A stretch of 64,000 nucleotides of DNA from IMGVR_UViG_3300026078_000017:186001-250000; one strand, 5' to 3'; shown: positions 5,646 through 58,714, counted from the first letter of the stretch. Numbers and translations are program-made. Notes: a model not told the origin generated them from the sequence alone.

Positions 5646-6590
5646 TTATTCGAATATTAACGAAAACATGTTGACGAAAGTTGTTGTGCCAGTGTCATCA
5701 ATAAACACTTTTCCAACGAAAAACACATGTTTTGTTGGGAATTCTATATCATTTGGAACCGTAAATAGACCAAAGTCGATAACATCTAGTTTTGTTATGG
5801 CATTTCCAGCCACTTCGAACATTTGACATACCAAGTTGTTCTGTCTGGAGGTCTGAAGGAAGGTCACCGTTTGCTTAAATCCAAGTTGATCACTATACCT
5901 AAACTCATTTTCAAGGTCATCATTGGTTAGGATTGGTGCTTGACCAAGGCTTGGGAAGACGCCAAGGGAAGACGTTGTGTTGCCGATTCTAGCTTTATTC
6001 ACAGGTGGCAAATACTTGAAATTGGGCACATGCGAGAGTCTCTTGTCCATGAAAAGACTTTCAATGCTGTTCACCTTGACACTTTGAAGAGCACTTGCTG
6101 AAATAGGAAGGTTGTTGGTAACCGTAAACTTCAGATTGTCATTTCCAATAAGGAACTCGTTAAATCTCTGGTCGAAGAAGTCTGGAGAACCCAACACACG
6201 CAACCTGGAGAAGGCATCAATCGAGGCAGAAGTCAAGAGGTCCCCTGACAAACTTGCAAAGTCAGACCCGGTTACAAACTGTCCAAGACTTCCAGAAAAA
6301 AGCTGACCTGCCTGAATGGTTAGGCCAGAGCTTCTAAAAGCCATGAGTTTGCCAGAGTCATCAGCCTCGAAAGTCACCTGGTCTTGTGGCAAGGAAGTAG
6401 CCTCAAAACAAATACGATAGGTTTCGTCCAGGTGAGATCCTGTGTTGATGGTGTCTGTGTTGTAAATGGCAAATGCATCAGTAAAGCTGTAGTACTCAGC
6501 CTTCATTTTACCAGATGCGAACTGACGGCGACCTTCCTGGGTTACGAAGGTGTCGAAAATGCGAGTCTTTGCGTCGAGTATTCCAGCCAT
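5646..6590 (-). CDS. Baseplate wedge / tail-collar-like protein (314 aa)
   Basis: N-terminal DTFVTQEGRRQFASG...YYSFTD resembles the T-x-x-G-R-x-x-x-A-x-G start of tail-collar/wedge proteins; operon position. Confidence 0.5.
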   Translation of the reverse strand: MAGILDAKTRIFDTFVTQEGRRQFASGKMKAEYYSFTDAFAIYNTDTINTGSHLDETYRICFEATSLPQDQVTFEADDSGKLMAFRSSGLTIQAGQLFSGSLGQFVTGSDFASLSGDLLTSASIDAFSRLRVLGSPDFFDQRFNEFLIGNDNLKFTVTNNLPISASALQSVKVNSIESLFMDKRLSHVPNFKYLPPVNKARIGNTTSSLGVFPSLGQAPILTNDDLENEFRYSDQLGFKQTVTFLQTSRQNNLVCQMFEVAGNAITKLDVIDFGLFTVPNDIEFPTKHVFFVGKVFIDDTGTTTFVNMFSLIFE

Positions 6591-6598
6591 TTTGTTAA

Positions 6599-7801
6599 TT
6601 AGTCAACTGCTTCAATATCAAAGTATGGCTGTCCCACACGTGCATGGATGTCAAATTGACCATTATCACGTGGATTAAACGTGCTTGCTCCAGAAGCAAT
6701 TAGGTCCAGACTAGCTGAGTTGTAGACTTGTGTTCCGCTGAGGAACGAAATCATAACTGGATAGTCAAGGGTTATGTTGTCTGAGGAAATGGTTGCGCCA
6801 TAAGGTGAAGTTTCCAAAAGGTCTCGGAAGAAACCAAAGTGGGTACGTCTGAAGACGTATTTTGGATTCACTGGGTTGGCATTCAGGACGCCATACTTGA
6901 ATCCTCTTAGTCTTGGGTTTGCTATGAAGTACAGATTGTTTGAGTTGCTTTGACTGTTAAACAAGTACACGTCAAATTGAGGCATTGTATGAAAGTTTGG
7001 AAGGGCAACTCTAGATGCCGAAACTGTCAACTCGGTTCCATCTCCGGCACCAAAGAAAACTTTCTTTATAAGGTCGAAGTTGACTGTTGTGAAACCACCA
7101 TTCAAACTAATGCTGGCCGACATGCTTTGACTTATATTGACGCTTGAAAACGAGACTTCTGGATTTGAGTTACAAACCGTTTCAAACCAATAAGAGTTAT
7201 ACCAACTTGGTAGTGTGGCAGAAGCAACACTTACGAAATGTAAGCCACCAAGAACTCTTCCTCCCAAAGCACCAGTAATGTATCCAAGTTGTCTGGTCTG
7301 AAATGTTTGTCTGATGATTTGTTTGTATTTGCTTTGAAATGGAAAACTGACAGGCCAAGGAGATGATGCACTCATGTAAATGTCAATTGCATCATTGTGA
7401 CTAATGGCTTCTGCATTTACGTCTGAATTTCCAAGATAGCCTAAAAGGCTAAAGCTAGCATAGTCTCCACTACGATCTGCAATCTTGGCCATATTTGGCA
7501 TTGTACTATCAAAAAAGATAGCATCTTGATTACTGCAAAACAGGAATCTGTTGTTTCCTTTGACTATGGCTCCAGACACAAACTGAATGAAGTCGTGATA
7601 TCTCCACTTTGGAAGTGTTGTAAAAAGAGAAGATGTTATTCCTGTAGACAGGTCTCCAATAACTTGACGTTTTACGTTATAGATGGAAGCCGAAACAGCA
7701 ATGCTTGAAGTCAAGGTTGACTTGCCAACCACAAACTGTGATGTCATGGAACCGCTAAACTCGGCTTTGAGTTCAAGTCCAAACTGATCAAAAACTGTCA
7801 T
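6599..7801 (-). CDS. Putative virion protein (400 aa), Ser/Thr-rich
   Basis: Long ORF with ATGA overlap in the baseplate operon; many SAS/SGS motifs. Confidence 0.6.
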   Translation of the reverse strand: MTVFDQFGLELKAEFSGSMTSQFVVGKSTLTSSIAVSASIYNVKRQVIGDLSTGITSSLFTTLPKWRYHDFIQFVSGAIVKGNNRFLFCSNQDAIFFDSTMPNMAKIADRSGDYASFSLLGYLGNSDVNAEAISHNDAIDIYMSASSPWPVSFPFQSKYKQIIRQTFQTRQLGYITGALGGRVLGGLHFVSVASATLPSWYNSYWFETVCNSNPEVSFSSVNISQSMSASISLNGGFTTVNFDLIKKVFFGAGDGTELTVSASRVALPNFHTMPQFDVYLFNSQSNSNNLYFIANPRLRGFKYGVLNANPVNPKYVFRRTHFGFFRDLLETSPYGATISSDNITLDYPVMISFLSGTQVYNSASLDLIASGASTFNPRDNGQFDIHARVGQPYFDIEAVD

Positions 7802-9555
7802 TCGATTGCCTCATGAATTGAGTTAGAAAACATGACTTGATTAAAGCCTGAGTTGAACTCAGTTCCTTCTTGAAGGTAAGAACCATAAAGAACAACCTTT
7901 GAGAAACCAGGAGCGATCGTAAGCTGTGCTCCAAAGTTACCACTACCAGTAATGAAAATTCCATCAGGATGTTGACGATCCCAAGTATCTCCCGTGTGAG
8001 GAGATTGCCAACCAAAAATCAACTGATCATTAGGGTACAAAATATATGGATTCAAAATCCAAGAGACGCCATTGATTTGATCTACCAGGCCAGTTGTAGA
8101 GTCGAAAACGCCATGACGTTGGTTGCCAGCAGTTGAATTCAAGAAGTTTCGATTGCCTACAATGGAAGAACTTCCATTTCTAGAATTGGGGAACGTTGGG
8201 ATTGTGTCATAAGTGTCAAACAAGTTACTTCCGCTTCTAATACGAAGGACAGCACCGTTGTCTTGATCTGTGGTAAACAAAGGAGTTGGAGCACAGACCA
8301 CTCCAGAAACAACATACTTGCCTGACCACTTCAACAAGGAACCATCAGGATCATCAGATCGTTGAAATGGAAAAATGATATTTACATTGAGATTTTTCTG
8401 CAAAGCAGGAACAATAGAAATATCTCTGGTTGCTGGATCTGTGGAAAAAGCTCCGGTGCCTGGTGTAAAGATAGGAAGACAGGCAACAATGTCCATCGTA
8501 CCTGAGTTATGGGAAACGGTGTAAGAAGCTGTTGTGTTTGAGAAACTGGTTGGCCCAGGATTTAAGACTACCGTTTCATTAACACTTCCATTTTTACGTT
8601 GGTTCAAAATAAAGAAGAAACTGGTACCTGAACCCAAGGCACCACCACTCCAGTTACATACAAGGTCACCAGAATTAAAGCTTCCAGTAAACTGAACGGC
8701 TACAGCTTCTACCAAAAATGGTCTTCGAAGTTTATTACTCATCGAGTAAAGAATCGAAGAAGAAACTCCAGTGTCTGGAACGAAGTACTTGTCAGCAAAA
8801 GGAAATCCATGTTCCTTGAATGGACGTACTGCCGAAAGCAATTCCATGTTAGGAAGAGCGTTCGTGTAAATGCCAGAAAAGGCACCAAATCCAATTGCTT
8901 TTTCTTTGTACCAAGGAACAATACCGACAGAACCTGTGGCAAGTGCCTGAGAAACGTAGTAGGTTGCCACACGTGGACTTCCAACAGGCTGCCAAGAAGC
9001 AGACCCATGGTTATAATAAGCCATTGTGTATGACTCTGAAATAGCAGGACCCCAGGCATCCCCAAGTGTTCTTGAGGCTACAGCCGAAAGATTGATTTCA
9101 ATCTTTTGTTTGCTCCACAAAGGACTACCAAAACCAATAATCTGAGTTCCGCTTGAGTACAACTGCAAGTTCTGAGACTTACCATCTACAGCAAACTGAT
9201 CATTATCGATAAATGGGTTGATGTTAGAACTGGAAGTATAGTATTTTGGGATATCCAGAAACACGTCAGAGATACCAGCGGCTACATAACCTGAACCTGT
9301 AATAGAAGGCAATAGTCCAGAACTAGAAATAGCAGGAATATAACTTGACCCAGTTGGGACGTTCAAACCATAATAAACATTTCTTTTGTTAAAGACGATA
9401 GTTTCAGTTTGATCATTAAATGGGCTTACGGTGGTTGTTACACCAATGGTTTTGGAAATAACTGGAGGATAACTGCCTGTTGTGCTGTCCTGAATGGTTA
9501 GTCTTACCTTGGGTGGAAGTCCTCTAATGGTTGTTCTTTTTTCGGTTCTTGCCAT
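7798..9555 (-). CDS. Putative virion protein (585 aa), Ser/Thr/Gly-rich
   Basis: Long ORF in the baseplate operon; many TGS/SGS motifs. Confidence 0.6.
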   Translation of the reverse strand: MARTEKRTTIRGLPPKVRLTIQDSTTGSYPPVISKTIGVTTTVSPFNDQTETIVFNKRNVYYGLNVPTGSSYIPAISSSGLLPSITGSGYVAAGISDVFLDIPKYYTSSSNINPFIDNDQFAVDGKSQNLQLYSSGTQIIGFGSPLWSKQKIEINLSAVASRTLGDAWGPAISESYTMAYYNHGSASWQPVGSPRVATYYVSQALATGSVGIVPWYKEKAIGFGAFSGIYTNALPNMELLSAVRPFKEHGFPFADKYFVPDTGVSSSILYSMSNKLRRPFLVEAVAVQFTGSFNSGDLVCNWSGGALGSGTSFFFILNQRKNGSVNETVVLNPGPTSFSNTTASYTVSHNSGTMDIVACLPIFTPGTGAFSTDPATRDISIVPALQKNLNVNIIFPFQRSDDPDGSLLKWSGKYVVSGVVCAPTPLFTTDQDNGAVLRIRSGSNLFDTYDTIPTFPNSRNGSSSIVGNRNFLNSTAGNQRHGVFDSTTGLVDQINGVSWILNPYILYPNDQLIFGWQSPHTGDTWDRQHPDGIFITGSGNFGAQLTIAPGFSKVVLYGSYLQEGTEFNSGFNQVMFSNSIHEAIE

Positions 9556-9557
9556 TG

Positions 9558-10388
9558 TTAACTGCCCCTAACCGTTCCCAGAAATGTAATAGAGTCTGTG
9601 CCGTAAATTGCTGAATCTCTACCATAAACGAAAGTATTTGTGTTAGCGGACCTGGTGCGACTTGGACGCAAGTCGCCATTGAGGTTCATATCCATGTTGT
9701 TTAGAACGCTCAGGAGGTCGCTGGTGGCACTTGTGGTCTGGGGAAGGGCGTTGATGGTCGTGTCGTTAAAAGCCCGTATAAGGCGTTCCTGGCCGAACGT
9801 ATAGCCATCTATGACGATACCATTCGAGATAGGACCCCAAACAGCCTCACCTTCATCCAAGAAGAACCTTTGCTGAATAGGGTCATCATATTCCTTGAAC
9901 TGGGTGGTTCTGTTGGCATTCTTGAAGATTGTGTCAAAGTCATTGCCATCTTCAACTTGACCAGCTACCCTGTGAGCGTAAAATGGACCTTCATTGCCAT
10001 TTTTCCTGAATGGGATCGTCAAAGGCATGATAATGGTTTCCTCTTCCTCTTGAGGACCATCATTGAACACGATAGGAAGTGGGTAGTTCATTCCCAGAAC
10101 AATAAAACTAACCGGGTCGAACTCTGGCAAGTCTTGGAACAAGGGAGAGTTCTCATACTCCGTGAAAGACCTTGCCTGACCAATGGTGTGAATATCCACA
10201 ACGTGGTCAAGGTCACCAGACCAAATTTTAGGTTGAGTAGAGAAGAATCTATGACGATTTGTGGTAATTTCCACACCTTGACGGTAGGCGTCAATAGCCA
10301 AGGTATCACTTCCACCAGTGTCTGAGTCTGTTGGAATGTAAATTACCTGTTGTGAGTCGTCAAATGGTGTAAATTCGTTAGAAGACAT
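9558..10388 (-). CDS. Putative virion protein (276 aa)
   Basis: Tiles the operon with 1-2 nt gaps; acidic. Confidence 0.6.
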   Translation of the reverse strand: MSSNEFTPFDDSQQVIYIPTDSDTGGSDTLAIDAYRQGVEITTNRHRFFSTQPKIWSGDLDHVVDIHTIGQARSFTEYENSPLFQDLPEFDPVSFIVLGMNYPLPIVFNDGPQEEEETIIMPLTIPFRKNGNEGPFYAHRVAGQVEDGNDFDTIFKNANRTTQFKEYDDPIQQRFFLDEGEAVWGPISNGIVIDGYTFGQERLIRAFNDTTINALPQTTSATSDLLSVLNNMDMNLNGDLRPSRTRSANTNTFVYGRDSAIYGTDSITFLGTVRGS

Positions 10389-10389
10389 A

Positions 10390-13300
10390 TTAGTACCGCT
10401 TAAAGTCGCCCGTGATCAACTGCAACAAAATCGTATCTTTTAGACCATGACGGTTATTGTCGCCAAGGTAAATATCAGAGTACAGATATTCCAGTTTTGG
10501 TCTTTCAAGCATGTGGCTTTCAATAACGAAGTTAGTTCCAAGATACTTGGTTTTTCTTGGAATAAGTTGAGCAATGAAAGTTCCAATATTTGTGTCAAAC
10601 CACTTATAGAACTCGAAGAAGCTCTTCAGGTTCATTTTGTCTGTAAGTCTGTTGAAGTAGACTTCTCTAAGGAAGGCAAGTCGTGGGTAGTCAGGGGAGA
10701 ACAACAACTCAGGATTACCAATGATGTTATCCAGGGCATTAAGAGTTGAGAAAATGCCAACCATGTCTTGGTCAAGAGCATCTACAATCGAGAAGTCGAT
10801 GGTGAATCTTGTGTTGTCTGTTGGTTGTTCAGAAAGCTCCACACGATACAAGGGAGCAACTGCCGCATAAGAGCTGGAAAGGACATTTTGATAGTTCAAG
10901 AAGGACCTTGGACGTACCTTCTCTGTTGTGGAGGCTTCATCGAACTTTGGAGAGATGTAACTATAAAAGAATCTCTCTGGAACTACGACAGAAGATGTAG
11001 CTGGGAAAGAACTACCGGAAAAATGCGACAAGGCTCCGAGATAGTTCAAGTTTTGGGAGTAGTCGAAGAACTGAATCTGTCCAGAAGCATCCGACTGTGT
11101 AACCTGTTGATCCATGGAAACATCGAGACGAAGTCTTTCCCAAGAACCTGATGCGTTCGTCACGAAGTTGAAGTTAAGATCAGGGTTCTGAACACCAAGA
11201 GACTTGAAGTTTCTTACGTGTTCTTGCCATTCGTCACTCTCAAGATATTTTGACCAGAATCTAATCTGACCAACACGACCATCGAAATAGGTTACTCTAG
11301 AAGTCTCAGGTGCCGAACCTGTCTGGTTCAAGAAATATGGAGAGGTTGAAGAAAGACTTTGGGAACCCAAGGCCAACCAGGATGCGCTTGCATTTGCAAC
11401 GCTGCTATTGGTTCCCCAAACCGAAGTTGCTCCACCAGGAATTTCATTGAAGAAACTAGATGTAAAGTAGGCTTCAGTAATGTCACCAAAACTCTGCTTG
11501 GCTGCTCTAAGGAAATAAGAAGAAGAGACCACAGAGTTGAGGTCTGGGTGATCACTTCTTTGACGACCATAAGAGACATACCACTGACCACCATCAAAAA
11601 TGTCTGCACCCGTAAGAACAAGACTAACAATTGGACTTGCAGAAGCCGTGATGGTTGGTTGTGTGTAAAGTGTAATATTTTTGGAACCAGAAACCGCTAC
11701 AACGTTCAACAGGGCTTGTTCGCCTGGAACGCTTCCGGTGTTCATGATACGAATAAGACCTTGAGACACATGGTTAACGGTATTCTTTGGAAACCTATAT
11801 GTTCCTTCAATTGTGAAGGAACCAGAAGTAAGATAGCCGGCATCCGTTGTGAATCCAGGTGTAACGAAAGGATAGCCAGGTTCAAATCTGGTCTGGTACA
11901 AATATTCGCTTCTTAGGTATCCGCCTGACACGAAGTTGGCAAAGGAAGAAATCTCCGAACGTTTGTCTCTGACGAAAGAAAGAGGAGCCTTTGTTGGACC
12001 ACCAAACTCACGAATTCTGAAGTTGTTATCTGGGTCAATACCAACAGAACGAATGAAGGACTTCACTGAGTGAATCGTTCCCTTGGACTTTACAACGTCT
12101 TGAAGGTTGATCAAAATACGTCTCCAGATTTGATTCTGGATGTACTGAAGGCTTAGAGCATTTGTAGAAACATCGTCTTGGATGTTTTCTCGATTAATAT
12201 ACTGCTCAATAGAACTGCCAACAAACAACGGTGGCAAGTTGAAGCCCTGTTGTTTAGCCATAAACTGCAAAAATTGATCTGGGACAGTGTCTTCAGAATT
12301 ATAGTCAACCCAGTTCAAGTTAGAGAATGACTGGATGTAAAGCTTCATTTCATCGAAGTACTTTGCCCACACATAAGCAAATGACAAGAGAAGTTGAGTA
12401 CCTCCCAGTTGAGCTGACCGAGGGTCTGTACCAGAAATGATGGTATTGATGATGTTGCCTTGTTCTGTAGCAAGTCCATCTTGAACTTGACCTTCAAGAA
12501 GGTAGTGTTTTGGAACAAGTTTCGTAATGAGGTTGGGGTTGGCGTCATCAAAGTTGGATGCACTAACCATGAAGCTTTGATTGAACGTAAGAACTTGTGG
12601 GTGAGTACCGAAAAGAATTGGCGTGAACTCCAACTTCTCATAGGTCATTGGGTCTGGACCTGCAACAGAACCTGTAGGAATCTCTCTGACTCTGAGAGCA
12701 TTTCCGGCAATGTTCAACTGTCCATGAAGACCTTGACCACTAGAATCCAAGGTAAGAAGCGTGTTTGATCCTGAAGGTTCATTAAGTTTGAAGTACAACC
12801 TAAGGTCATCACTTGCAAAGACTGCCTTCTTTTGGTAGTTCAGTCTGTCATCAAGACTTCTAACCGAATGCCAAATTCTAAAGTCATCTAGGGCACCAGA
12901 AAGTGTATTTTGTGGTGCGTGAGTAAATGATCCCATGGAGAAACCGGAACCAGAACCTATGACAAGGTCAATGCCGTCCCAAAAGGTTTCTCCCAGTTCA
13001 AACGAAACGCTTGATCCAGTCAACGCCTGATTGACATAAGCGTACATTTGGTTGACATTTGGAGTTCTGTCCCAAATCAAAGCTACATTGTTCCAGGTTC
13101 CCTTTCGCAAGGAGAACGACATTGTTTGACCCAAGGATTTACTTGCAACCGTGTAGTACATCGGTGCCATGTCAGTATTTGCGGTACCGCTGACAACCAA
13201 GGAGAAACCATCAAGTCCACTAATGGACTGGGACATCTTACTGAAGACTGTTTGTGTGGTATTTGAACCTGAAGGAAGATAAACCCAAAACTCTATTGTC

Positions 13301-13836
13301 GTAGAGTCAAGACCAGGATTAAGCTTAGAGGCACCTGTGATGTCCTTGGAGACGTTTGGGAAGGCAGCACCGGCACTGTCCTTGACAGTAATCCAAGTGC
13401 CAGCATTCGTCTCTGAACCCTTAGAGCCAGAGAAGAAGGCATATCCCTTGTACTTGGGATAATTGTCAAAGACATATTTCTCAAAGCCCGTCAAGCGGTC
13501 AAAGAACATTTCATATTCTTTTTGTGAGCCGTCAAATGGGAAAGAGTCGACAATTGTTGTAAATGCAACGTTAGTCTTGACCTGAGCACTGTTGAAGAAT
13601 GTGTGATTTTCAAACTTGGACCAGTCTACATTCAACTGTTGAGTGGACTTGAGTCCTTCATTGTCAAGGTCATACTTGAAGGAAGCTGTCATGCCAATTA
13701 CAGAATCAGCCAAGTCTGCACCAATAACCTTCGTAAATGTCGAAGATTTTGCTGCATCTTCTGTTAAGCCTCTTACAAGATTTGGCGTAAACAGGGATGG
13801 TCGGTTGAACCGTAAGTTGTCATTGTTATCTGTCAT
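10390..13836 (-). CDS. Baseplate wedge subunit (gp7 / P2 gpI-like) with two LamG (concanavalin A-like) domains
   Basis: LamG signatures (TIEFWV...WNNVALIWD...GALDDFRIW; second copy GQWYVSY...GRVGQIRFW) flank a WRRILINL...KSKGT..SV helical motif typical of gpI/gp7-like proteins. Confidence 0.65.
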   Translation of the reverse strand: MTDNNDNLRFNRPSLFTPNLVRGLTEDAAKSSTFTKVIGADLADSVIGMTASFKYDLDNEGLKSTQQLNVDWSKFENHTFFNSAQVKTNVAFTTIVDSFPFDGSQKEYEMFFDRLTGFEKYVFDNYPKYKGYAFFSGSKGSETNAGTWITVKDSAGAAFPNVSKDITGASKLNPGLDSTTIEFWVYLPSGSNTTQTVFSKMSQSISGLDGFSLVVSGTANTDMAPMYYTVASKSLGQTMSFSLRKGTWNNVALIWDRTPNVNQMYAYVNQALTGSSVSFELGETFWDGIDLVIGSGSGFSMGSFTHAPQNTLSGALDDFRIWHSVRSLDDRLNYQKKAVFASDDLRLYFKLNEPSGSNTLLTLDSSGQGLHGQLNIAGNALRVREIPTGSVAGPDPMTYEKLEFTPILFGTHPQVLTFNQSFMVSASNFDDANPNLITKLVPKHYLLEGQVQDGLATEQGNIINTIISGTDPRSAQLGGTQLLLSFAYVWAKYFDEMKLYIQSFSNLNWVDYNSEDTVPDQFLQFMAKQQGFNLPPLFVGSSIEQYINRENIQDDVSTNALSLQYIQNQIWRRILINLQDVVKSKGTIHSVKSFIRSVGIDPDNNFRIREFGGPTKAPLSFVRDKRSEISSFANFVSGGYLRSEYLYQTRFEPGYPFVTPGFTTDAGYLTSGSFTIEGTYRFPKNTVNHVSQGLIRIMNTGSVPGEQALLNVVAVSGSKNITLYTQPTITASASPIVSLVLTGADIFDGGQWYVSYGRQRSDHPDLNSVVSSSYFLRAAKQSFGDITEAYFTSSFFNEIPGGATSVWGTNSSVANASASWLALGSQSLSSTSPYFLNQTGSAPETSRVTYFDGRVGQIRFWSKYLESDEWQEHVRNFKSLGVQNPDLNFNFVTNASGSWERLRLDVSMDQQVTQSDASGQIQFFDYSQNLNYLGALSHFSGSSFPATSSVVVPERFFYSYISPKFDEASTTEKVRPRSFLNYQNVLSSSYAAVAPLYRVELSEQPTDNTRFTIDFSIVDALDQDMVGIFSTLNALDNIIGNPELLFSPDYPRLAFLREVYFNRLTDKMNLKSFFEFYKWFDTNIGTFIAQLIPRKTKYLGTNFVIESHMLERPKLEYLYSDIYLGDNNRHGLKDTILLQLITGDFKRY

Positions 13837-15419
13837 TATTCAGAAACTACCTTAAATCTGAACCCTTGTTCGTAGAAGAAGTCTGTTCTACCATTTTCCT
13901 CAAGCTTGAACTCGAACTCATACACTTTACTTGCCTGAAGGTCATTGAACCAAAAATCAAAGAACATTCCTTGGCTGTCTGAAGACAACTTTGTTCCTTG
14001 GGTGTCAAACGGAACAATGATTTCTTTAGTATAGGGGTCAATAACTCTCCAGTACATATTTTTGAAAATTCTAGACACCGCTGGCTTTGGAAGGCGTTGT
14101 GTGGCGAAGTCGAACTCCCAGTCTTGAATGAACACACGAAGACGTGTGTTTTCTTTCTTTGTGTAGAACTGTTCAAGATTGGTGATGTTAACCACATAGT
14201 TTCTTTGGTCGAAAGAAACACCATCACCCATAAGCTTGGAAAACTTCACATATCCACCAGAAGCAAACAAGTAGGTTTTGTCCAAGGACTTCCACAACAA
14301 CAAGAAACTCTGGTCATAACCTGAGGCACTTACAAATGAGTTGAGTTGAATGTCCGAGAACGTGTTAAGTGACACGTCAGCATAATAAGAACCTGTTTGT
14401 TTCAGGTTGCCAAAGGAAAGCTGACTGCCAGTAAAGGAAGAACTAAAGTAAGAATTGCTGCTAGTGTAAAATGTGATTGACTGTGAGTGGCTTTGTGACC
14501 AAGAGGTTACTGGAATAATGCTGCTCTTGGAAGCAACCAACTCCAACATCAAACAGTTTGAACCTGTGATTTCCTGAGCACCCGACATGAAGTTGTGATA
14601 AATGCCTCTTGGAGACGAGTAGACAAAAAATCTATTTGGCACATCAAACATAGCCAAGTTAGAGTCATCAGAAACGACATTGCCATCATATTTGATGTAA
14701 AGTTGAGGTCTAAAAGTTGGGTTATTGGTGTTGCGTCCACCAAACCTCTTTACAAATCGAGTTGTCTGGTCAGTCTCCTGAGAGTCGATGAAGCTGAGTC
14801 TGAAGCCATTGTTTGGAAGATTTCCCCACAAGGAAGCAGACACGAGTTGTGTTACATTCATGAACAAGTCTTCATCACCACGACCAAAAGACTGTGTGAC
14901 ACTCAAACTCTGAGAACCAAAACCAATGTTGCCGCTTACGTAATAATCACAGATGTCACCGATAGCTCCCGAGGCAGCAGCACCAGAAACTGTCCACAAG
15001 GTCACAGAAGGGTTTACAGAGGCTGTAATCCAGTTAGCAGCGTCCAAGTCTCTAAAGTAAAGAACGTCAGAACCTGCTCCTTCGTTCCAGTCTTTTGCAA
15101 GAGGATGAAGTTGAAGGGTAAAATTCGATGGAACAGTTTGACCGCCATTAATGTTTTTCAAGTACAAAAAGGCACCAAAATTTGCACCAGAAGCATCTAA
15201 GATGGAACTGGTCAAGGACTGAAGAGGTGAGTAGTCAAACTTCAACAGGGCTCTTGATAGCTCGGTTGGATTGTTTGTTCCAGATAGTGTCGTTTCACCA
15301 TAAAGGTGGAACAGGTCCATGCTTGCTGCTTGACCAACGTTTGAGTACAAAGACCTAGACCCGAACAAGATTTTGTCGGTAATGTAGGAATCTTTGCTTG
15401 ATGACAAAATTCTAAACAT
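13836..15419 (-). CDS. Baseplate-associated protein with DNRLRE/CBM96-like domain
   Basis: KDSYI...RALLKFD...LHPLAKDWNEG...MNVTQLV...NNGFRL...RPQLYIKY pattern. Confidence 0.6.
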   Translation of the reverse strand: MFRILSSSKDSYITDKILFGSRSLYSNVGQAASMDLFHLYGETTLSGTNNPTELSRALLKFDYSPLQSLTSSILDASGANFGAFLYLKNINGGQTVPSNFTLQLHPLAKDWNEGAGSDVLYFRDLDAANWITASVNPSVTLWTVSGAAASGAIGDICDYYVSGNIGFGSQSLSVTQSFGRGDEDLFMNVTQLVSASLWGNLPNNGFRLSFIDSQETDQTTRFVKRFGGRNTNNPTFRPQLYIKYDGNVVSDDSNLAMFDVPNRFFVYSSPRGIYHNFMSGAQEITGSNCLMLELVASKSSIIPVTSWSQSHSQSITFYTSSNSYFSSSFTGSQLSFGNLKQTGSYYADVSLNTFSDIQLNSFVSASGYDQSFLLLWKSLDKTYLFASGGYVKFSKLMGDGVSFDQRNYVVNITNLEQFYTKKENTRLRVFIQDWEFDFATQRLPKPAVSRIFKNMYWRVIDPYTKEIIVPFDTQGTKLSSDSQGMFFDFWFNDLQASKVYEFEFKLEENGRTDFFYEQGFRFKVVSE

Positions 15420-15421
15420 GA

Positions 15422-17263
15422 TTATACCGATGTTCCTTCAATATCAAAGTCCTTGTATCGGATTTCGAAAATAGATCCTGGTGGGCCAATGATAATACCC
15501 TTGGTTGTGTTAGAAGCCACGTCGAACTGTGCTGAACTGTAAACTCTACTGTTCTGTGCACCAGTAAGGTTCTTCACAGAAACGTTCGTTACAGACACAA
15601 CACCGTTGTTATTGAAAATAAGATTCTGCAAGTCAGATAGAATGATTGGTTGGTCAATCTCAAAGTGCTTTATAGAAAAGTACTGTGTCAATCTTGACAC
15701 AATGTTTTGAAGAACGAGTTTCTTGTTCTTGGTTGGGTCGATCACCACAGAAAACTCAACCTTGAGGTTGATGATTTGAGCATCGAGAATATCGATGGCA
15801 TCAGAAATCATTCTGAAGGAATTCAAATAGGTCTGAAGGTTCTTCTTCAAGCTATCTGGAGACACAACAAGTTGACCTTGTTGATTTCTCGAAATGATGT
15901 AAAGTTGAGTTGCAAGTGGGTTGTTCTGGTTGGACCTAACAGAAGCACGATAAACTCTTCCAAAGTTGGAAGGCATCGTATACACACGGGCAAGCAAGTC
16001 TGGCTTTGTGACAATGCGACTCTGGGAGGCACGAACTGCTGGAATGCGAGTCTTTAGTTCGTCTGTGGTTGGAGCGTCATCTCCTCCTCCAGCATCTTGT
16101 TCATTTACTGCATCTACGGATTTTCTAACGAAAGATGCAACAGATGTACTTGGACCATTTGGGAAACTAATGTTGAGAGTACCAACACCTCTAATAGCTC
16201 CACCAATGACGTTGTGTTTCAAACCACCACCATATCTGTATTCTACAGACAAGGTCGAGTTTGGAGAAATAACACCAAATGTCGTGGTCTGAAGAAGATT
16301 GCCAGGATTCAAGGTAAATCTGGAGAAAGTCTTCTTTCCATAGAGTGGAACTGCAAACTCACTTGGATCTGGAATGATGTCATCATCCAAGGTAGAAGCA
16401 CCACTTCCACCAAAGGTCAAAGACGTAAGGCGTGTCTGAATGTCAGTTCTCTTGATAAAACGATATGGAGCTGGAATGATAGCCAAGTTTTCTTGAACCA
16501 GTTCATTGTCATCGTTTCGGTTAATCAGAGCCTGGAATACTGTGTCTTGGGTCAGGTACTCAACTTCATAGTACTTGTTGCCCTGTGAGTCAGAAACTGA
16601 AATGACCTCAGTAACATTTTCTTTTGAAAGGGTGAACTTCTTGAAAGCCTCGAAATTTCCGATAGAGAAAGACTCGACCTGACGATTACCAGAAAGAGCT
16701 GTGCCCTTTCGAGACATGATGAATGCTGTAGGATTGTTATTCGCATCTCTTCCAGAGATACGAACGCTCGCAACATAGTTGCCGTCAATCGTTTCAGAAA
16801 AATCTAGGTCATCCACAAGTTCGAAGGATGTACCCACGTTTGAAGGGAAGGTTGTACCTGCCTCAATAACTGGGATAGCTGCTAGAAGGGGAGCCGGAGG
16901 GTTTTGGTTTGGGTCGGCTGGGACTTCGAGAGAGATCGTAATATCCACGACAGCCGGGGACGAACCAACGATATCAACACCCGCATTTCTGAGGTGGCGT
17001 TCGATATTCCGAAGCTCAACAGACGAATTCGGGTCCAACTCATGGAACTGATGATCGAGATAGAAACTTTGTACGTCCCCAATATACGCGGCAAATTCCA
17101 AGAACATACCACCAAGCGAAGGCTCGCTAAGGTCACGAATGCGATCCGGGAAGTGTACTCTTGCATATTCAAACAAATCCTGCTTAAAACCAGAGAAATC
17201 CTTGTTTAAGTATTTTCTGGTCTTGATTTGCTTTAAAATCTGCTTTCGTGAATCAGTTGGCAT
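15422..17263 (-). CDS. Baseplate wedge protein (T4 gp6 / baseplate J-like)
   Basis: NKDF..FKQDL.EYA..HFP...D.SE...GGMFLE..AYIGD N-terminus; YRYGGG, GGGDDAPT..ELK, SRIVT..D motifs; follows gp25. Confidence 0.85.
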   Translation of the reverse strand: MPTDSRKQILKQIKTRKYLNKDFSGFKQDLFEYARVHFPDRIRDLSEPSLGGMFLEFAAYIGDVQSFYLDHQFHELDPNSSVELRNIERHLRNAGVDIVGSSPAVVDITISLEVPADPNQNPPAPLLAAIPVIEAGTTFPSNVGTSFELVDDLDFSETIDGNYVASVRISGRDANNNPTAFIMSRKGTALSGNRQVESFSIGNFEAFKKFTLSKENVTEVISVSDSQGNKYYEVEYLTQDTVFQALINRNDDNELVQENLAIIPAPYRFIKRTDIQTRLTSLTFGGSGASTLDDDIIPDPSEFAVPLYGKKTFSRFTLNPGNLLQTTTFGVISPNSTLSVEYRYGGGLKHNVIGGAIRGVGTLNISFPNGPSTSVASFVRKSVDAVNEQDAGGGDDAPTTDELKTRIPAVRASQSRIVTKPDLLARVYTMPSNFGRVYRASVRSNQNNPLATQLYIISRNQQGQLVVSPDSLKKNLQTYLNSFRMISDAIDILDAQIINLKVEFSVVIDPTKNKKLVLQNIVSRLTQYFSIKHFEIDQPIILSDLQNLIFNNNGVVSVTNVSVKNLTGAQNSRVYSSAQFDVASNTTKGIIIGPPGSIFEIRYKDFDIEGTSV

Positions 17264-17271
17264 GTGTATCC

Positions 17272-17745
17272 TTAAATAACAAACAGGGTGACTTCTAATT
17301 TGGCATTATTGATCGCAAGTGAAGCTACAGAATAAATTAGCACCAGTTTGACGATTCCGGTGTATCTATTTTCCACTTGGTCGACATATGACTCATAAGC
17401 CACAGGTGTAACGAAAGGCATCCACTTCGAAATGGCTGTGTTTATACGAATCATCGCCTCTTGATCAAAGTCTGGTTTTGATGAGAAATCAACCAAAAGT
17501 GGTCTTAAATTGGCACCAAGGAAATAGTTTCCGAGTCTTTCGCCCCAATTCGTTAAGATAAGGTTTCGAAGATTGTCAGCAACCTGAGCCTTAATGTCAG
17601 TGTTCATTAGGAACAAGCCGTTCTGAGATGGGTCAGGTTCTACTGGGGTTTTGATGCCAATTGGCGTAATGGTCTTGTTCTTATTCAAGACGTCTTGTTG
17701 CTTAAAGCCCGTTACGCCAACATCTTTGAAAGAGATTTGTGCCAT
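17272..17745 (-). CDS. Baseplate wedge protein gp25 (GPW/gp25 family)
   Basis: NLRNLILTNWGER...GANLRPLL...I..AISKWMPFV pattern; directly upstream of gp6. Confidence 0.85.
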   Translation of the reverse strand: MAQISFKDVGVTGFKQQDVLNKNKTITPIGIKTPVEPDPSQNGLFLMNTDIKAQVADNLRNLILTNWGERLGNYFLGANLRPLLVDFSSKPDFDQEAMIRINTAISKWMPFVTPVAYESYVDQVENRYTGIVKLVLIYSVASLAINNAKLEVTLFVI

Positions 17746-17769
17746 TTTGTTAAATATTTCGACAAGGGA

Positions 17770-18012
17770 TTATGCGCTAGACCCTGTTGGAAGACCTAAG
17801 GTCGTCACACGGGTACTGAGCTGGTTGATTTGGCTTTGAATGGACACAAAGCTGGCAGTTATCTGGTTTTGTATGTACAGGTCTATTTCTGTAGCAAGAT
17901 TCTGAGCAAAGGACAACTTCAGGGTTTGAGCCTGTTCAGGAGTCGTTACAGTTTGTGAGGAGTCCAAAATCCTTACGATTGCATCCCCAAGTTCTTTTTT
18001 GTTTGTTGCCAT
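17770..18012 (-). CDS. Hypothetical protein (80 aa)
   Basis: TAATG overlap with the upstream gene; tiles the operon. Confidence 0.6.
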   Translation of the reverse strand: MATNKKELGDAIVRILDSSQTVTTPEQAQTLKLSFAQNLATEIDLYIQNQITASFVSIQSQINQLSTRVTTLGLPTGSSA

Positions 18013-19601
18013 TATTCTCCGAAGATTCTTTCTGACTTGGCTTTCTCGACAATAGAGTTGTCACCACTGCCTACTAGATTTTGTTCTTTTTGAGTAATTG
18101 TTTGTTGAAGTTGACCTCTATAAAGAGTATTCGACAAAATTTGACTGGATGCAATTGCCTGAAGGGAAGCAATGTTGCTATATGGAACCGCAATGGCAGT
18201 GTTGAAAGCTGTCTCCAAGGTAGTCGTCAAACTTGAACAGAAGTCCTTCAAGGCATTTACTTGATCCTGAAGATTCTGAATGGAGTTCTTGTATTCTGAC
18301 CACTTGATGTATGGCTCAGCCTTTCCAGTTGCCTTGCCCAGGTACATCTCTGGGGCATACATCTGAAGCTTGCCATTTTTATCAATATACAGATAAGCAA
18401 GGTCATCTTCATTATCTGCTTGACGAATGATTAGGATGGTTCCATCGATTTGGTCGGTCTTTCTGGCAATCACACGAATGTGGTCTGCCTTGGCAGCAAC
18501 ATAAGACTTACCAATAGTACCATCGTTTCCATCTTGAGGTTGTTCAAACTCTAGGGTATCATCAGGAAAACTGACATCTGTCAACTTGAAGTTTTTGTCA
18601 AGTTCTGACTGCATCGTAACCATAATACGAGCAGCATCATTCTCCATGTCAGGATCACCCTCACGTGGGTTATCTTGCTTTCCTTCTTGAAGATATGGGG
18701 TTTTGTTTACCTCTTCCACATGACGAGAGTTCTCTACGACACGTGGAGCTGTCTCTTCTGGATCCGTGTTCTCATCTGGAGGGAGCTTACGAGCACGTCC
18801 TGCGACTATGTCAATAGAACCTGCCTGACCGATAGCATCTGCTTCAGCACGAACCACAGGACCCGTTCTGTCTTCTCCAAAAACAATCATGGAGTTGTTC
18901 TTGCCCTGAAGAACAAACTCACCTACGCGTTTGTTGAATCTAGGAACAGGTTCAAAGGTGAAGTTCTTTATCGAGTTGCTGCCCTCCACAATGCCATCGT
19001 AGGGGTTTTCGTTGTTTGACCCAGTAACTCTAAGGGTCAAGGTCTGAGGCGTGTCAGCACCATTTGGGAAGCTTGGAGTATGGTCCTGGTCTCGTCCACG
19101 TTCTGTGGTGGATAGGAGTTGTGGATTGTATTCCGGAAAGAATCTACGGTCATGAACGTTATAGTTCACATCCTCAATAGTTCTCTGTTCTGAGACTCTG
19201 GAAATCCAATAGCCAACCACCGTTCCACTTCGACTTGGATCTGGGAAAATAACCCAAACCTGTTCGCCAGGAACAATAGGAAGTTCAATATAGGAAGAGA
19301 ACAAAGGAAACAACACAGTAGAGATAGGGTTACCACTGTCTGCCGAGTCTGAAACCATTCTTGCCAAAATGGAGTTGACAGGAAGAATGTCTACGAGTTC
19401 AGGGTTGTTTACCTGTTCAGCAAGTGCTTGTTTCTGGTCATCTGACAAAGCACTAGGGTTATCCAAAACCTCTACTACAACAGCCCTTTGAAGGGTTGGA
19501 GCTTGACCTTGTGTTTGAACTGCCCTGATTTCCTGAGTAGGCTGACCAAGGGTCGAACCTCCCACAGCTCTTCTAGAAACCGCACTTGATATTCTTGCCA
19601 T
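18012..19601 (-). CDS. Baseplate hub/central spike protein (gp5-like OB-fold)
   Basis: N-terminal AVVVEV...PLFSSYIELPIVPGEQVWVIF...GYW OB-fold-like pattern, beta-rich C-terminus, position upstream of gp25. Confidence 0.55.
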   Translation of the reverse strand: MARISSAVSRRAVGGSTLGQPTQEIRAVQTQGQAPTLQRAVVVEVLDNPSALSDDQKQALAEQVNNPELVDILPVNSILARMVSDSADSGNPISTVLFPLFSSYIELPIVPGEQVWVIFPDPSRSGTVVGYWISRVSEQRTIEDVNYNVHDRRFFPEYNPQLLSTTERGRDQDHTPSFPNGADTPQTLTLRVTGSNNENPYDGIVEGSNSIKNFTFEPVPRFNKRVGEFVLQGKNNSMIVFGEDRTGPVVRAEADAIGQAGSIDIVAGRARKLPPDENTDPEETAPRVVENSRHVEEVNKTPYLQEGKQDNPREGDPDMENDAARIMVTMQSELDKNFKLTDVSFPDDTLEFEQPQDGNDGTIGKSYVAAKADHIRVIARKTDQIDGTILIIRQADNEDDLAYLYIDKNGKLQMYAPEMYLGKATGKAEPYIKWSEYKNSIQNLQDQVNALKDFCSSLTTTLETAFNTAIAVPYSNIASLQAIASSQILSNTLYRGQLQQTITQKEQNLVGSGDNSIVEKAKSERIFGE

Positions 19602-21234: not shown

Positions 21235-22413
21235 TTACACTACGCTTCCCAAAACCGCATCATAAGCTGTGGAAATTGCTTGAAAAGAGTGTGTTTTCAA
21301 CAATTTACCCTGAAGCTCCTCAGCCCACTGTTTTGGAATGGTCGAGTTTTCATAGAACTTGAGGACACGCTTCTTGAAGTCTTCCTCGTCAGCAATGCCC
21401 CATTGAGAGCCTGGCATCCAGATTTCATTGTCAAAACGACCTGGAGGAACTGCTCCTACCTTGGTATCAACCTTGATGTACTTGCCTTGACCCAGGAACT
21501 CTGTGTGAGCTGACCAACCAGAGGCAATCACTGGAACACCGCTTGCTGCCGCCTCTAAAATCGGTAAACCGAATCCTTCACCATGGGTGAGGGTTACTAG
21601 CGCCTTGATGGAAGGGTGCTTATAGAGCCTTACAACCTCCTCGTCGTTCATTTCCCCGTGAAGAAGATAAAGTTTTGGATTTGTGCCTTTGTTGACTTGG
21701 CTAAGAAGACCCGTCAACTGTTGCTTGCACAAGAACTCATCTGCCTTGGTGTAACGACCCATGTTGGTCTTCAGAACAATGCCAACGTCTGGCTTGTCTG
21801 CAAAGACCTCAAACAGCCACTTGAGCGTAAATGGAAGGTTCTTTCGGTCGGTAGCTGCGTCACCACCCGTGATCTGACCAAATACCAAGAAGTTAAATGC
21901 CGTGTCGGTTTTGAAGTCAAGAGGCTCAACTGTGGAAGACTCTAGAATCTTGTCAAAGAAAGCCTCGGGAACAACAACGATTGGGGTTGTGACCTTTCCA
22001 GAGTTCATGAACACAGACTTGGTAAACTCAGAAGGAACAATAACCAAGGTCATCTTGTTTACGTGTTCAATCCACTTTGGATTACAGCGGTCTGCCTCTA
22101 CGCCTGCCGTCATACCAATATTTACCTTACCAAGTTCAGGACACCACTCATTTGGGAGCTGGAGTTGGATTGTCACATCATAAAGCTTCTTTTGCTTTTG
22201 GGTGGCACTTGCCTGAAAACAACGACCAATCAGGTCATTCTGGGCATAGGTGTCAACATACCAAGGAGTACCTCCCCAGTTCAAAAGTTCTGTCGTAATG
22301 TCCAAGTTGCCATTCTTGTCGGCACGGTCAAACAACCACCTTGCAACTTGTCTTGCGTGAACTCCATAACCACTCTGTGAAAGAAGTGGCGCTCTCAGAA
22401 GAACTGTTTTCAT
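21235..22413 (-). CDS. Glycosyltransferase, GT4/GT-B fold
   Basis: SGYGVHAR N-terminus; HGEGFGLPILEAAASGVPVIASGW (EX7E) motif. Confidence 0.85.
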   Translation of the reverse strand: MKTVLLRAPLLSQSGYGVHARQVARWLFDRADKNGNLDITTELLNWGGTPWYVDTYAQNDLIGRCFQASATQKQKKLYDVTIQLQLPNEWCPELGKVNIGMTAGVEADRCNPKWIEHVNKMTLVIVPSEFTKSVFMNSGKVTTPIVVVPEAFFDKILESSTVEPLDFKTDTAFNFLVFGQITGGDAATDRKNLPFTLKWLFEVFADKPDVGIVLKTNMGRYTKADEFLCKQQLTGLLSQVNKGTNPKLYLLHGEMNDEEVVRLYKHPSIKALVTLTHGEGFGLPILEAAASGVPVIASGWSAHTEFLGQGKYIKVDTKVGAVPPGRFDNEIWMPGSQWGIADEEDFKKRVLKFYENSTIPKQWAEELQGKLLKTHSFQAISTAYDAVLGSVV

Positions 22414-30875: not shown

Positions 30876-30879
30876 AGGA

Positions 30880-31482: not shown

Positions 31483-31882
31483 TGTCCCACATTTCCTTCT
31501 CGTAAGAATACTTCTTGGCAATCCACTCTTTGTAAAAATGATGTCCTATGTCTAGAGACACATAGTTGTCTCCTTGCATGCCTTGCTCAGAGTAGTCTAC
31601 ATCGTTACAAGCTTTCTTAGAAAATCCTTTTTTGGCTAGGAACTTATGAAACTCCTGTAGCCACAAGCCATCCGTGTAAATCAGTCCATGTTTATCTGGA
31701 TTCCAGGAACTCTTGTAAAAGTAAACCTTGAGTTCTCCCCAGGGCTTCTGTACAGGTCCATCCCAGGATTCGAAAATAAATCTGGCTCTGGCATCACGCA
31801 TCTTGACTTTTCTGTACTCATTTGACCACAACCCATTGCCGGCTGTTTGAATAAGCTTGTTTATTGCCAGATGTTTTTTCAT
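31475..31882 (-). CDS. Hypothetical phage protein (135 aa)
   Basis: GELKVYF...W...GLIYTD...YSEQGMQGDNYVS pattern that I recall from large-phage hypotheticals; not a sugar enzyme. Confidence 0.6.
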   Translation of the reverse strand: MKKHLAINKLIQTAGNGLWSNEYRKVKMRDARARFIFESWDGPVQKPWGELKVYFYKSSWNPDKHGLIYTDGLWLQEFHKFLAKKGFSKKACNDVDYSEQGMQGDNYVSLDIGHHFYKEWIAKKYSYEKEMWDND

Positions 31883-31883
31883 G

Positions 31884-32606: not shown

Positions 32607-32609
32607 AAA

Positions 32610-58711: not shown

Positions 58712-58714
58712 CTT

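Follow-up and report, generated by a model that had tools for sequence, protein, structure and literature searches.

The window analysed here is a stretch of 64,000 nucleotides (IMGVR_UViG_3300026078_000017:186001-250000) from the 320-kb record of an uncultured phage. It carries a tightly packed, same-strand array in which genes for baseplate proteins lie together with a cluster of glycosyltransferase (GT) and nucleotide-sugar genes, followed by genes for fibre proteins (Table 1). The outer baseplate and fibre proteins contain four to six times too many Ser/Thr-Gly/Ala-Ser triplets ([ST][GA]S), whereas the roughly 20 ORFs of the enzyme block at 19.6-38.1 kb hold a single site in all.

Table 1. 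Features of the window, with [ST][GA]S sites observed and, in brackets, expected from composition-preserving shuffles
Position	Strand	Feature	Sites (expected)	Supporting observations
5646..6590	-	314-aa baseplate protein	5 (0.65)	Family total 62 vs 16.4 expected
6599..7801	-	400-aa baseplate protein	6 (1.31)	5 of the 6 sites are SAS; family total 47 vs 12.5
7798..9555	-	585-aa baseplate protein	9 (2.10)	Family total 143 vs 43.5
10390..13836	-	1148-aa distal baseplate protein with two predicted LamG/ConA-like jelly-roll domains	17 (2.97)	Sites start at residues 50, 136, 189, 273, 295, 355, 388, 425, 671, 700, 716, 730, 732, 817, 839, 896 and 940; Foldseek hits are LamG-type domains
13836..15419	-	527-aa predicted multi-beta-sandwich baseplate protein	6 (1.59)	Highest family enrichment among relatives, 414 vs 69 in 49 relatives; Foldseek hits are Ig/CBM-like sandwiches
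21235..22413	-	Core GT4 glycosyltransferase, 392 aa		Pfam GT4; complete EX7E motif (E279, E287); syntenic upstream of the baseplate genes in every relative whose contig reaches that far (30 of 33 records, the 3 misses being contig ends)
22410..23852	-	Core GT4-like protein, 480 aa		Pfam; stop overlaps the start of the 392-aa gene; lacks the second Glu of EX7E; predicted heterodimer with the 392-aa GT4
23849..33434	-	Variable sugar cassette		Pfam; fusion of an N-terminal epimerase/reductase-type domain with a C-terminal GDP-mannose 4,6-dehydratase domain, two methyltransferases, a GT-like 312-aa protein, a PseB/CapD-like dehydratase, an epimerase/reductase, a GT6, a GT2 and four unknown ORFs; content differs between relatives
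33413..34432	-	GT2-like core protein at the far edge of the cassette, 339 aa		Weak Pfam GT2 hit; found in 19 of 24 relatives' records; also present, fused to the 357-aa protein, in a motif-poor relative
34423..35286	-	PD-(D/E)XK nuclease, conserved anchor gene of the module		Pfam; directly next to the GT4 pair in motif-poor clades and in phages immuto and LR756508; in Mel-JY01 an IMPDH/GuaB gene lies between it and the first GT
40105..40821		238-aa ORF	0 (1.25)	Not enriched
40837..42987	-	716-aa Gly-rich fibre protein	15 (5.57)	Sites partly inside internal repeats (TGS-x-G-x-GG-S-[VI])
43180..43914	-	244-aa fibre-associated protein	7 (1.33)	Weak H-type lectin hit

A protein-level excess confined to distal virion proteins

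The first-pass annotation had counted 12 [ST]GS triplets in the 1148-aa protein against one to two expected, and had noted the recurrence of TGS, SGS and SAS in the other baseplate and fibre proteins and their rarity in the enzymes. This observation is confirmed. The 1148-aa protein has exactly 12 [ST]GS against 1.67 expected from 2000 composition-preserving shuffles (z 8.1, reached in 0 of 2000). Apart from the 238-aa ORF at the start of the fibre region, the 821-aa, gp6-like 613-aa and 276-aa proteins are likewise not enriched, each having no site. In an unbiased scan of all tripeptides in the structural block TGS ranks first (29 vs 6.3, z 8.7), and SGS (25 vs 8.3) and SAS (20 vs 6.4) are also among the most over-represented. 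Genome-wide, over 465 ORFs, the strongly enriched long proteins all lie at genome positions 179-201 kb and 226-230 kb. The major capsid protein is not enriched (4 vs 1.67), unlike in the known mycobacteriophage case.

The enriched proteins are richer in Ser and Gly than the enzymes, but several controls reject a chance or compositional artefact. Shuffling only inside blocks of 6, 10 or 20 residues still gives 81 observed sites against 20-23 (z 13-14). Permutations of the same residues are not enriched, with SGS at 25 against GSS 8 and SSG 8, TGS at 28 against TSG 3, GTS 3 and STG 1, and SAS at 19 against ASS 1 and SSA 3. All serine codons are used, TCN and AGY in background proportions, so the signal arises at the protein level. 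In addition, the excess replicates in hundreds of diverged homologues, and we consider this explanation refuted.

To place the sites structurally, we examined AlphaFold2 models. In the model of the 1148-aa protein (pLDDT 69), 10 of 16 confident sites are predicted in coil, 2 at strand edges, 2 in strands and 2 in helices, and many lie within 2 residues of a strand end. In the model of the 527-aa protein (pLDDT 85) the sites are found in loop, coil, strand and helix, with two inside strands and about two in helices. Many sites appear to be Gly-centred tight turns flanked by hydrophobic strand residues. Hydrophobic residues flank the motif at 1.5x, whereas Pro and charged residues are excluded, the latter occurring at 0.28x and 0.39x at positions -1 and +1.

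Conservation, concerted loss and the sugar module

The motif is maintained in all 63 IMG/VR relatives and in 129 full-length representatives of 50%-identity clusters (1511 vs 378, median 4.1x). It is conserved in more than 110 relatives whose GC content ranges from 28 to 57%, with no correlation to GC (rho 0.10). Several motif serines in loops are as invariant as core residues; S295, G296, S671 and G672 of the 1148-aa protein are invariant in 34 homologues. Sporadic, lineage-specific sites, in contrast, are about as frequent as chance, so there is no sign of ongoing gain of new sites.

Loss of the motif is concerted. At 12 conserved columns most representatives keep 9-11 sites and a minority keep 0-3, although both groups lie at 32-40% identity to the window protein. 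The poor ones form two to three separate clades nested among rich ones, which lost nearly all sites together. At those columns they carry D/N/E/K-G-x, so the fold tolerates other residues, which points to a trans-acting partner. Gly is kept at many of the same columns with Asp or Asn at position 1, and DGS is enriched in these relatives (17 vs 5.4).

Across very deep phylogeny the motif co-occurs with a conserved glycosyltransferase module plus a nucleotide-sugar cassette. All motif-rich phages carry the nuclease, two GT4 genes and a variable cassette, and about 6-21 kb of cassette separate the GT4 pair from the GT2-like gene in 19 of 19 records, as calculated from the gene coordinates. The two clean motif-poor clades have the nuclease directly against the GT4 pair and no nucleotide-sugar genes. 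Yet they retain an apparently intact GT4 pair, with the catalytic residues and 48-59 of 60 and 70-80 of 85 invariant residues (56-59 of 60 in four of the five homologues of the 392-aa protein), so the pair has a function that does not need the motif and cannot by itself explain it. No initiating transferase specific to motif-rich phages was identified; homologues of the GT2-like 339-aa protein and of GT2-240 also occur in one motif-poor relative. A third, intermediate clade has motif excess in its 527-aa homologue (6 vs 1.4) but no cassette within 9 kb. No relative lacking all GTs exists.

The same combination of motif excess in proteins downstream of the gp6-like gene, nuclease, two GT4 genes and sugar cassette recurs in two cultured distant relatives, Flavobacterium phage vB_FspM_immuto (98 vs 27) and Microcystis phage Mel-JY01 (52 vs 11.6). 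In contrast, T4 (12 vs 20) and Flavobacterium phage FCL-2 (8 vs 5.9) show no excess; FCL-2 has no annotated GT, and no sugar module like this one is known in T4. The 484-kb phage LR756508, which has GMD/GMER genes, shows only weak excess. No thymidylate-synthase-family hydroxymethylase was found in the 320-kb record, so there is no sign of the usual route to glycosylated DNA.

Interpretation and comparison with known systems

The first-pass annotation had proposed that the triplets are acceptor sites of a phage-encoded virion O-glycosylation system with its own sequon, served by the adjacent 13-kb cluster. Our results support this interpretation in part. In our best explanation Phi-[S/T]-[G/A]-S-Phi (Phi = hydrophobic) is a selected recognition element on loops and turns of the host-facing parts of the virion, namely the distal baseplate proteins and fibres, but not the capsid, the gp6/gp25-like inner wedge or the enzymes. 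The most likely mechanism would be cytoplasmic O-glycosylation of a motif hydroxyl by soluble phage-encoded glycosyltransferases late in infection, before or during tail assembly. The cassette would supply unusual nucleotide sugars (GDP-6-deoxyhexose from the dehydratase/reductase fusion and a 6-deoxy-HexNAc from the PseB-like enzyme), O-methylation, and extending transferases (GT2, GT6), giving a glycan whose composition varies between strains on a conserved set of attachment sites. The analysis itself establishes the motif, its selection, its distribution and conservation, its concerted loss and its co-occurrence with the glyco module. In the absence of any observed glycan, it remains an inference that the trans-acting partner is a glycosyltransferase, as do the identity of the modified residue, the enzyme that starts the chain and the role of the glycan, possibly shielding or adsorption control. 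We therefore regard this reading as the best but unproven one, with a probability of about 0.4.

The main rival, which we consider somewhat less likely, is that [S/T]-G-S-Phi is a structural idiom, this phage group's preferred way of building tight turns and strand ends in beta-sandwich and fibre proteins. It would be the ST-turn equivalent of the Asx-turn, inherited from a common ancestor, replaced by D/N-G-x in a few lineages and not modified, while the glycosyltransferases act on something else such as host envelope polysaccharide, lipid carriers or another acceptor. The exchange of Ser/Thr for Asp/Asn with retention of Gly, the hydrophobic flanks, the proximity to strand ends, the chance level of sporadic sites and the conservation of the GT4 pair without the motif all fit this view, as does the immuto spike, where the motif recurs every 5-9 residues followed by Phe/Tyr, like a solenoid rung. 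However, turn geometry does not explain why position 3 is specifically Ser and position 2 accepts Ala, with SAS and TAS enriched also in helices (residue 425 of the 1148-aa protein and residue 194 of the 527-aa protein), nor does it account for the strand sites. An intrinsic fold constraint should also not disappear at some ten sites in several proteins at once in particular clades while more than 50 equally diverged lineages keep it. Moreover, the motif is enriched in unrelated folds (LamG-like, Ig/CBM-like and Gly-rich fibre), and the likewise beta-rich tail proteins of T4 and FCL-2 show none.

Alternatively, the motif could be recognized by a different trans-acting factor, be it another modification (phosphorylation, acylation, ADP-ribosylation), a tail or fibre assembly chaperone, or selection imposed from outside, such as the avoidance of charged, protease-sensitive or defence-recognized surface loops, so that its link with the sugar cassette would be only indirect. 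The all-or-none behaviour across proteins, the exclusion of charged residues around the motif, the charged or amide residues swapped in by motif-poor clades and the core GTs that do not track the motif are compatible with this idea. Nevertheless we judge it unlikely, because no kinase, acyltransferase or ADP-ribosyltransferase was seen among the window's annotated genes, the glyco module provides the only trans-acting genes that recur with the motif over deep phylogeny, and charge avoidance does not predict the order-specific [ST]-[GA]-S arrangement.

A more far-reaching form of the main reading, not excluded by the evidence but tentative, is that a widespread, sequon-directed cytoplasmic O-glycosylation system coats the host-recognition apparatus (distal baseplate, spikes, fibres) of a very large group of aquatic myoviruses, from 300-kb uncultured jumbo phages to cultured Flavobacterium and Microcystis phages. 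Conserved attachment sites would be combined with a swappable nucleotide-sugar/GT cassette, in effect an O-antigen-like serotype system for virions. Virion glycosylation by phage-encoded enzymes is established only for mycobacteriophages, and no phage O-glycosylation sequon is known. If the motif marks sugar-attachment sites, it offers a sequence rule that predicts glycosylated virion proteins directly from metagenomes, the 1148-aa family alone having more than 1300 clusters at 50% identity. It would also explain the GT and nucleotide-sugar 'islands' that are common in aquatic phage genomes and usually attributed to host-surface remodelling, and reveal a new variable layer on the very proteins that decide host range. 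If it is instead a structural idiom, it is still a useful marker of a deep phage lineage and an unusual case of clade-wide concerted replacement of turn residues.

Among aquatic jumbo phages, the 'Moraphage' lineage is characterized by heat-shock (DnaK/DnaJ) genes in all members and four core GT orthogroups (PMC12619734). Several core GTs are present here, but no HSP70 family match was found in the 320-kb record, which is 81% complete. The general O-glycosylation of Bacteroidota also uses a three-residue sequon, D-[S/T]-[A/I/L/V/M/T], in the likely host phylum of at least one motif-bearing phage, since immuto infects Flavobacterium. That system, however, acts in the periplasm on exported proteins and requires Asp before the acceptor, whereas here acidic residues occur at 0.28x of background at position -1 in 2932 unique contexts and virions assemble in the cytoplasm. 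Chloroviruses and giant viruses likewise carry their own nucleotide-sugar enzymes (GMD/GMER-type), methyltransferases and GTs and use non-canonical sequons for their capsid proteins (PMC9614988). The closest solved relative of the 480-aa protein is the chlorovirus NY-2A GT B736L (E 1.4e-9), although this similarity is distant, and chlorovirus glycans are N-linked on the major capsid protein of a eukaryotic virus, while the candidate sites here are O-type and lie on tail proteins of a bacterial virus.

Another parallel is the GtfA/GtfB O-GlcNAcylation of serine-rich repeat adhesins in Gram-positive bacteria, in which two GT-B proteins act together in the cytoplasm on Ser in an S-A-S / S-x-S context. 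Similarly, the two adjacent GT-B/GT4-type proteins, one lacking part of the catalytic motif, are predicted to form a complex (ipSAE 0.88 against a best control of 0.01). That mark was reached by 58 of 80 solved complexes and 2 of 110 mismatched pairs; the runs agree in at least 97% of contacts and the partner pLDDT is at least 84. The immuto spike is, in addition, a dense array of SAS/TAS/SGS units. Yet neither single-sequence nor profile searches of the PDB returned GtfA or GtfB, the best hits being generic GT4 enzymes and B736L, the candidate acceptors in the window are isolated turns in folded domains rather than long disordered repeats, and the pair persists where the motif is lost. Finally, in mycobacteriophages soluble phage-encoded glycosyltransferases are also proposed to decorate virion proteins in the cytoplasm, with a glycan thought to shield the particle (Freeman et al. 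2023, Cell Host Microbe; cited in PMC12619734). There the glycans were shown by mass spectrometry and sit on C-terminal, Ser/Thr-rich tails of the capsid and tail-tube subunits. In this phage, whose genome encodes GT4, GT2, GT6 and GT-like proteins and whose tail tube protein was not identified, the candidate sites are inferred from sequence alone and are internal tripeptides dispersed over distal baseplate and fibre proteins.

The tripeptide excess and its controls

The window is bases 186001-250000 of a 320,479-bp IMG/VR virus record, estimated to be 81% complete, which belongs to a jumbo myovirus. It encodes a gp6-like baseplate wedge protein (PHROG 219), two adjacent tail-sheath paralogues of about 1000 aa each and a gp23-type major capsid protein at genome 121.5-123.5 kb, and nearly all genes from 3.2 to 45.3 kb of the window lie on the minus strand in a tightly packed array. 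To evaluate the motif, we translated 47 ORFs and compared the counts in each protein with 2000 composition-preserving shuffles. The observation made in the first-pass annotation was confirmed, as its count of 12 [ST]GS triplets in the 1148-aa protein is exact against 1.67 expected (z 8.1), and [ST][GA]S occurs 17 times against 2.97. The 585-, 527-, 400- and 314-aa proteins and the 716- and 244-aa fibre proteins are also enriched. In contrast, the 238-aa ORF in the fibre region and the 821-, 613- (gp6-like) and 276-aa proteins have no site, and the whole enzyme block has one. Over 465 ORFs of the genome the enriched long proteins cluster at genome 179-201 kb and 226-230 kb, and two more lie just upstream of the window, with 12 vs 2.2 in a 786-aa and 6 vs 1.2 in a 384-aa protein. 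Both tail-sheath paralogues have a mild excess (5 vs 2.05 and 6 vs 1.96).

Several controls were used to exclude trivial origins of this signal. An unbiased scan of every tripeptide puts TGS first (29 vs 6.3), with SGS and SAS close behind. The specificity is sharp: at position 1 only S and T are enriched before GS, while D, N and G are not, and at position 3 S is favoured, with T and A weaker. Shuffling only within blocks of 6-20 residues leaves 81 observed against 20-23 (z 13-14), and permutations of the same residues (GSS, SSG, TSG, GTS, STG, ASS, SSA) are at expectation, so that local Ser/Thr/Gly-rich patches cannot explain the signal. A motif at the DNA level was rejected as well, since the nine-base strings are diverse and the serine codon classes match background. 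A search for the T4-type late promoter TATAAATA gave 0 hits. PHROGs and Pfam returned nothing for the target proteins except the gp6-like wedge and LamG, and INPHARED held no match to the 1148-aa protein or to 20 kb of window DNA.

Conservation, predicted structure and concerted loss

In IMG/VR, 63 contigs encode homologues of the 1148-aa protein at 37-75% identity, and all show the excess. About ten sites are conserved in at least half of 41 non-redundant sequences (residues 232, 295, 355, 425, 647, 671, 700, 817, 896 and 940), some fifteen more are semi-conserved, and sporadic sites occur at about the chance rate. S295, G296, S671 and G672 are among only 72 invariant columns. By family, the 314-, 400-, 585-, 1148-, 527- and 244-aa proteins are enriched 3.3-6.0x in relatives, whereas the 821-, 613- and 157-aa families are at 0-0.6x. 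Some families thus look depleted (0.4-0.6x), but T4 virion proteins sit at 0.6x too, and we do not claim avoidance of the motif in non-target proteins. A profile search of 1.84 billion cluster representatives revealed a very large family, with 1303 representatives at E below 1e-30. The 129 full-length ones among the best 150 sum to 1511 sites against 378 expected, with a median ratio of 4.1. GC content of the motif-rich loci runs from 28 to 57% and does not correlate with the ratio (rho 0.10, p 0.29), and a 29%-GC relative with a full cassette is motif-rich, which led us to reject GC or mutational drift (N/K/D to S/T) as a source.

The AF2 model of the 1148-aa protein (pLDDT 69) has two LamG/ConA-like jelly rolls. 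Of its 16 sites in confident regions, 10 are in coil, 2 at strand edges, 2 in strands and 2 in helices, compared with 38-46% coil among all windows. The 527-aa protein (pLDDT 85) is predicted to be a chain of beta-sandwiches, with its sites in a loop, a coil, two strands and two helix positions. Across 2932 unique contexts the extended motif is Phi-Phi-[ST]-[GA]-S-Phi (Phi, hydrophobic). Hydrophobic residues are 1.4-1.55x at positions -2, -1 and +1, acidic residues 0.28x at -1 and 0.39x at +1, and Pro 0.17x at +1.

A few cluster representatives have no excess, among them P0121 (0 vs 1.3), P0109 (2 vs 1.6), P0114 (2 vs 1.6) and P0081 (3 vs 1.8). At the conserved motif columns of the window protein they carry NGQ, DGS, NGL, DGT, KGN, NGA, PGS and, at the helix site, EAV/DAI/EAE, and DGS is one of their enriched tripeptides. 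Gly-centred turns are therefore shared, but Ser/Thr at position 1 and Ser at position 3 are not required by the fold. The distribution over 12 conserved columns is close to bimodal, with a main mode at 9-11 and a minor mode at 0-3. Both groups lie at 32-40% identity to the window protein, and among 77 representatives below 42% identity, 52 keep at least 7 columns and 11 keep at most 3. In a midpoint-rooted FastTree the poor sequences form three separate clades nested among rich ones. The motif-poor clades are P0121, P0109/P0114/P0081 and P0131. Concerted loss at many sites, also seen in the 527-aa homologues of the same contigs, is what one expects when a trans-acting partner is lost and not what an intrinsic fold constraint predicts. 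Three motif-poor relatives (L089, L090 and L094) have an extra gene of about 200 aa between the 529-aa homologue and the gp25-like gene, without a counterpart there in the window.

The glycosyltransferase module and its surroundings

In the window, a 392-aa GT4 with a complete EX7E motif and a 480-aa GT4-like protein, in which the second Glu is missing, are encoded by genes overlapping by 4 nt. They are predicted to form a tight heterodimer, with an ipSAE of 0.88 against a best control of 0.01, a mark reached by 58 of 80 solved complexes and 2 of 110 mismatched pairs. The runs agree in at least 97% of contacts, the partner pLDDT is at least 84, and the predicted interface includes strand pairing of residues 247-255 with 422-428. 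The pair is syntenic in every relative whose contig reaches it (30 of 33 records) and is conserved from jumbo phages to Flavobacterium phage vB_FspM_immuto and Microcystis phage Mel-JY01. Beyond it lies a cassette whose content differs between relatives. In the window it holds a fusion of an N-terminal epimerase/reductase-type domain with a C-terminal GDP-mannose 4,6-dehydratase domain, two methyltransferases, a PseB-like dehydratase, an epimerase/reductase, a GT6, a GT2 and unknown ORFs. GT6, here a strong Pfam match (E 1.6e-50), is the family of the histo-blood-group A/B transferases, so a fucosylated, blood-group-like glycan is conceivable. The cassette is bounded by a GT2-like 339-aa gene and a PD-(D/E)XK nuclease, and in 19 motif-rich records the coordinates place the GT4 pair and the 339-aa gene about 6-21 kb apart.

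In the two clean motif-poor clades the nuclease abuts the GT4 pair, only one small GT2 is nearby and no nucleotide-sugar gene is seen. However, the GT4 pair there keeps 48-59 of 60 and 70-80 of 85 invariant residues, and one such relative also has the 339-aa homologue. A third clade is intermediate, as its 527-aa homologue has 6 vs 1.4 but there is no cassette within 9 kb, and the 484-kb phage LR756508 gives a weak, ambiguous signal.

Searches with the gp6-like and 480-aa proteins identified the cultured phages immuto and Mel-JY01 at about 30% identity. In both phages proteins downstream of the gp6-like gene are strongly and order-specifically enriched, with 98 vs 27 in immuto and 52 vs 11.6 in Mel-JY01. 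The immuto total includes the annotated 1053-aa tail spike (gp101), with 53 vs 12 copies arranged as [ST][GA]S-[FY] every 5-9 residues; nearly all are followed by Phe, Tyr, Ile or Leu (for example SGSF-SGSF-xGDGS and TASY-x-x-TASY), and no Pfam repeat family covers the array. Both phages have a PD-(D/E)XK nuclease and two GT4 genes followed by a sugar cassette (GT2, aminotransferases, methyltransferases, mannosyltransferase), although the module is not adjacent to the baseplate genes there. In immuto only a small hypothetical ORF separates the nuclease from the GT pair, whereas in Mel-JY01 an IMPDH/GuaB gene lies between them. The nuclease and an IMPDH/GMP-reductase gene also sit side by side next to the GT module in the window, a synteny conserved over very deep divergence and as yet unexplained. 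T4 (12 vs 20) and Flavobacterium phage FCL-2, which has no annotated GT (8 vs 5.9), show no excess, and this rejects a generic property of myovirus tails or of phages infecting this host genus.

Coordinates of the module and of neighbouring features (positions in the window unless another record is named)
Position	Strand	Feature
21235-23852	-	Overlapping 392-aa GT4 and 480-aa GT4-like genes
23849-25855 and 30186-30875	-	Epimerase/reductase-type and GDP-mannose 4,6-dehydratase fusion, in the same cassette as the GT6-family match
34423-36632; 4932-6925 of L242 (Mel-JY01)	- (window)	PD-(D/E)XK nuclease and IMPDH/GMP-reductase gene
36619-37092	-	157-aa ORF matching only the first ~45 positions of the Gp23 major-capsid profile; not found in 11 relatives' contigs
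Genome 121539-123455		Full-length major capsid gene, about 100 kb away from the 157-aa ORF
43953-45311 and 38020-40008	-	PIN-PhoH fusion protein and Prim-Pol protein flanking the fibre genes
56100-59300	+	Run of about a dozen small ORFs (50-115 aa) coinciding with the strongest positive GC skew in the window; looks like an early-gene block (no tRNA genes anywhere in the window)
4253-10349 of L088 (genome 104253-110349)	-	Two tail-sheath paralogues
35314-38475 of L239 (immuto)		Tail spike gp101
5540-6148 of L089, 5472-6071 of L090, 5495-6073 of L094		Extra gene of about 200 aa in motif-poor relatives

Possible meaning of the motif and known systems

The analysis establishes that the motif is real, selected at the protein level, ancient and limited to the host-facing tail parts. 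That it depends on a trans-acting partner is argued from its clade-wide concerted loss, and that this partner glycosylates the motif is inferred from its recurrence with the glyco module over deep phylogeny, which makes glycosylation the best candidate. The proposal of the first-pass annotation, that the triplets are acceptor sites of a phage-encoded O-glycosylation system, is partly supported. We place this reading at about 0.4, since it rests on sequence and prediction without any measurement, the core GT4 pair does not track the motif, no motif-specific initiating enzyme was found, and there is a credible structural alternative. The GT4 pair is not supported as the motif-specific enzyme because it persists intact in motif-poor clades. 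The same holds for the GT2-like 339-aa protein, which is present in the motif-poor relative L093 and was not found in three motif-rich records.

The turn positions and the Asx/ST interchange offer a credible structural alternative, which we consider somewhat less likely. Another trans-acting factor or an external selection on surface loops remains possible, although it appears more doubtful still. With respect to DNA glycosylation, no thymidylate-synthase-family enzyme was found in the record, while a Tet/JBP search gave no match anywhere, including its controls, and is therefore uninformative.

In full-text searches no phage O-glycosylation sequon was found, and virion glycosylation by phage enzymes was found only for mycobacteriophages. 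Immuto has been studied for DNA modification, not for virion glycans. Membership of the 'moraphage' lineage was rejected because no match to HSP70, whose gene marks it, was found in the 320-kb record, which is 81% complete, although the paper describing that other aquatic jumbo lineage notes four core GT groups (PMC12619734).
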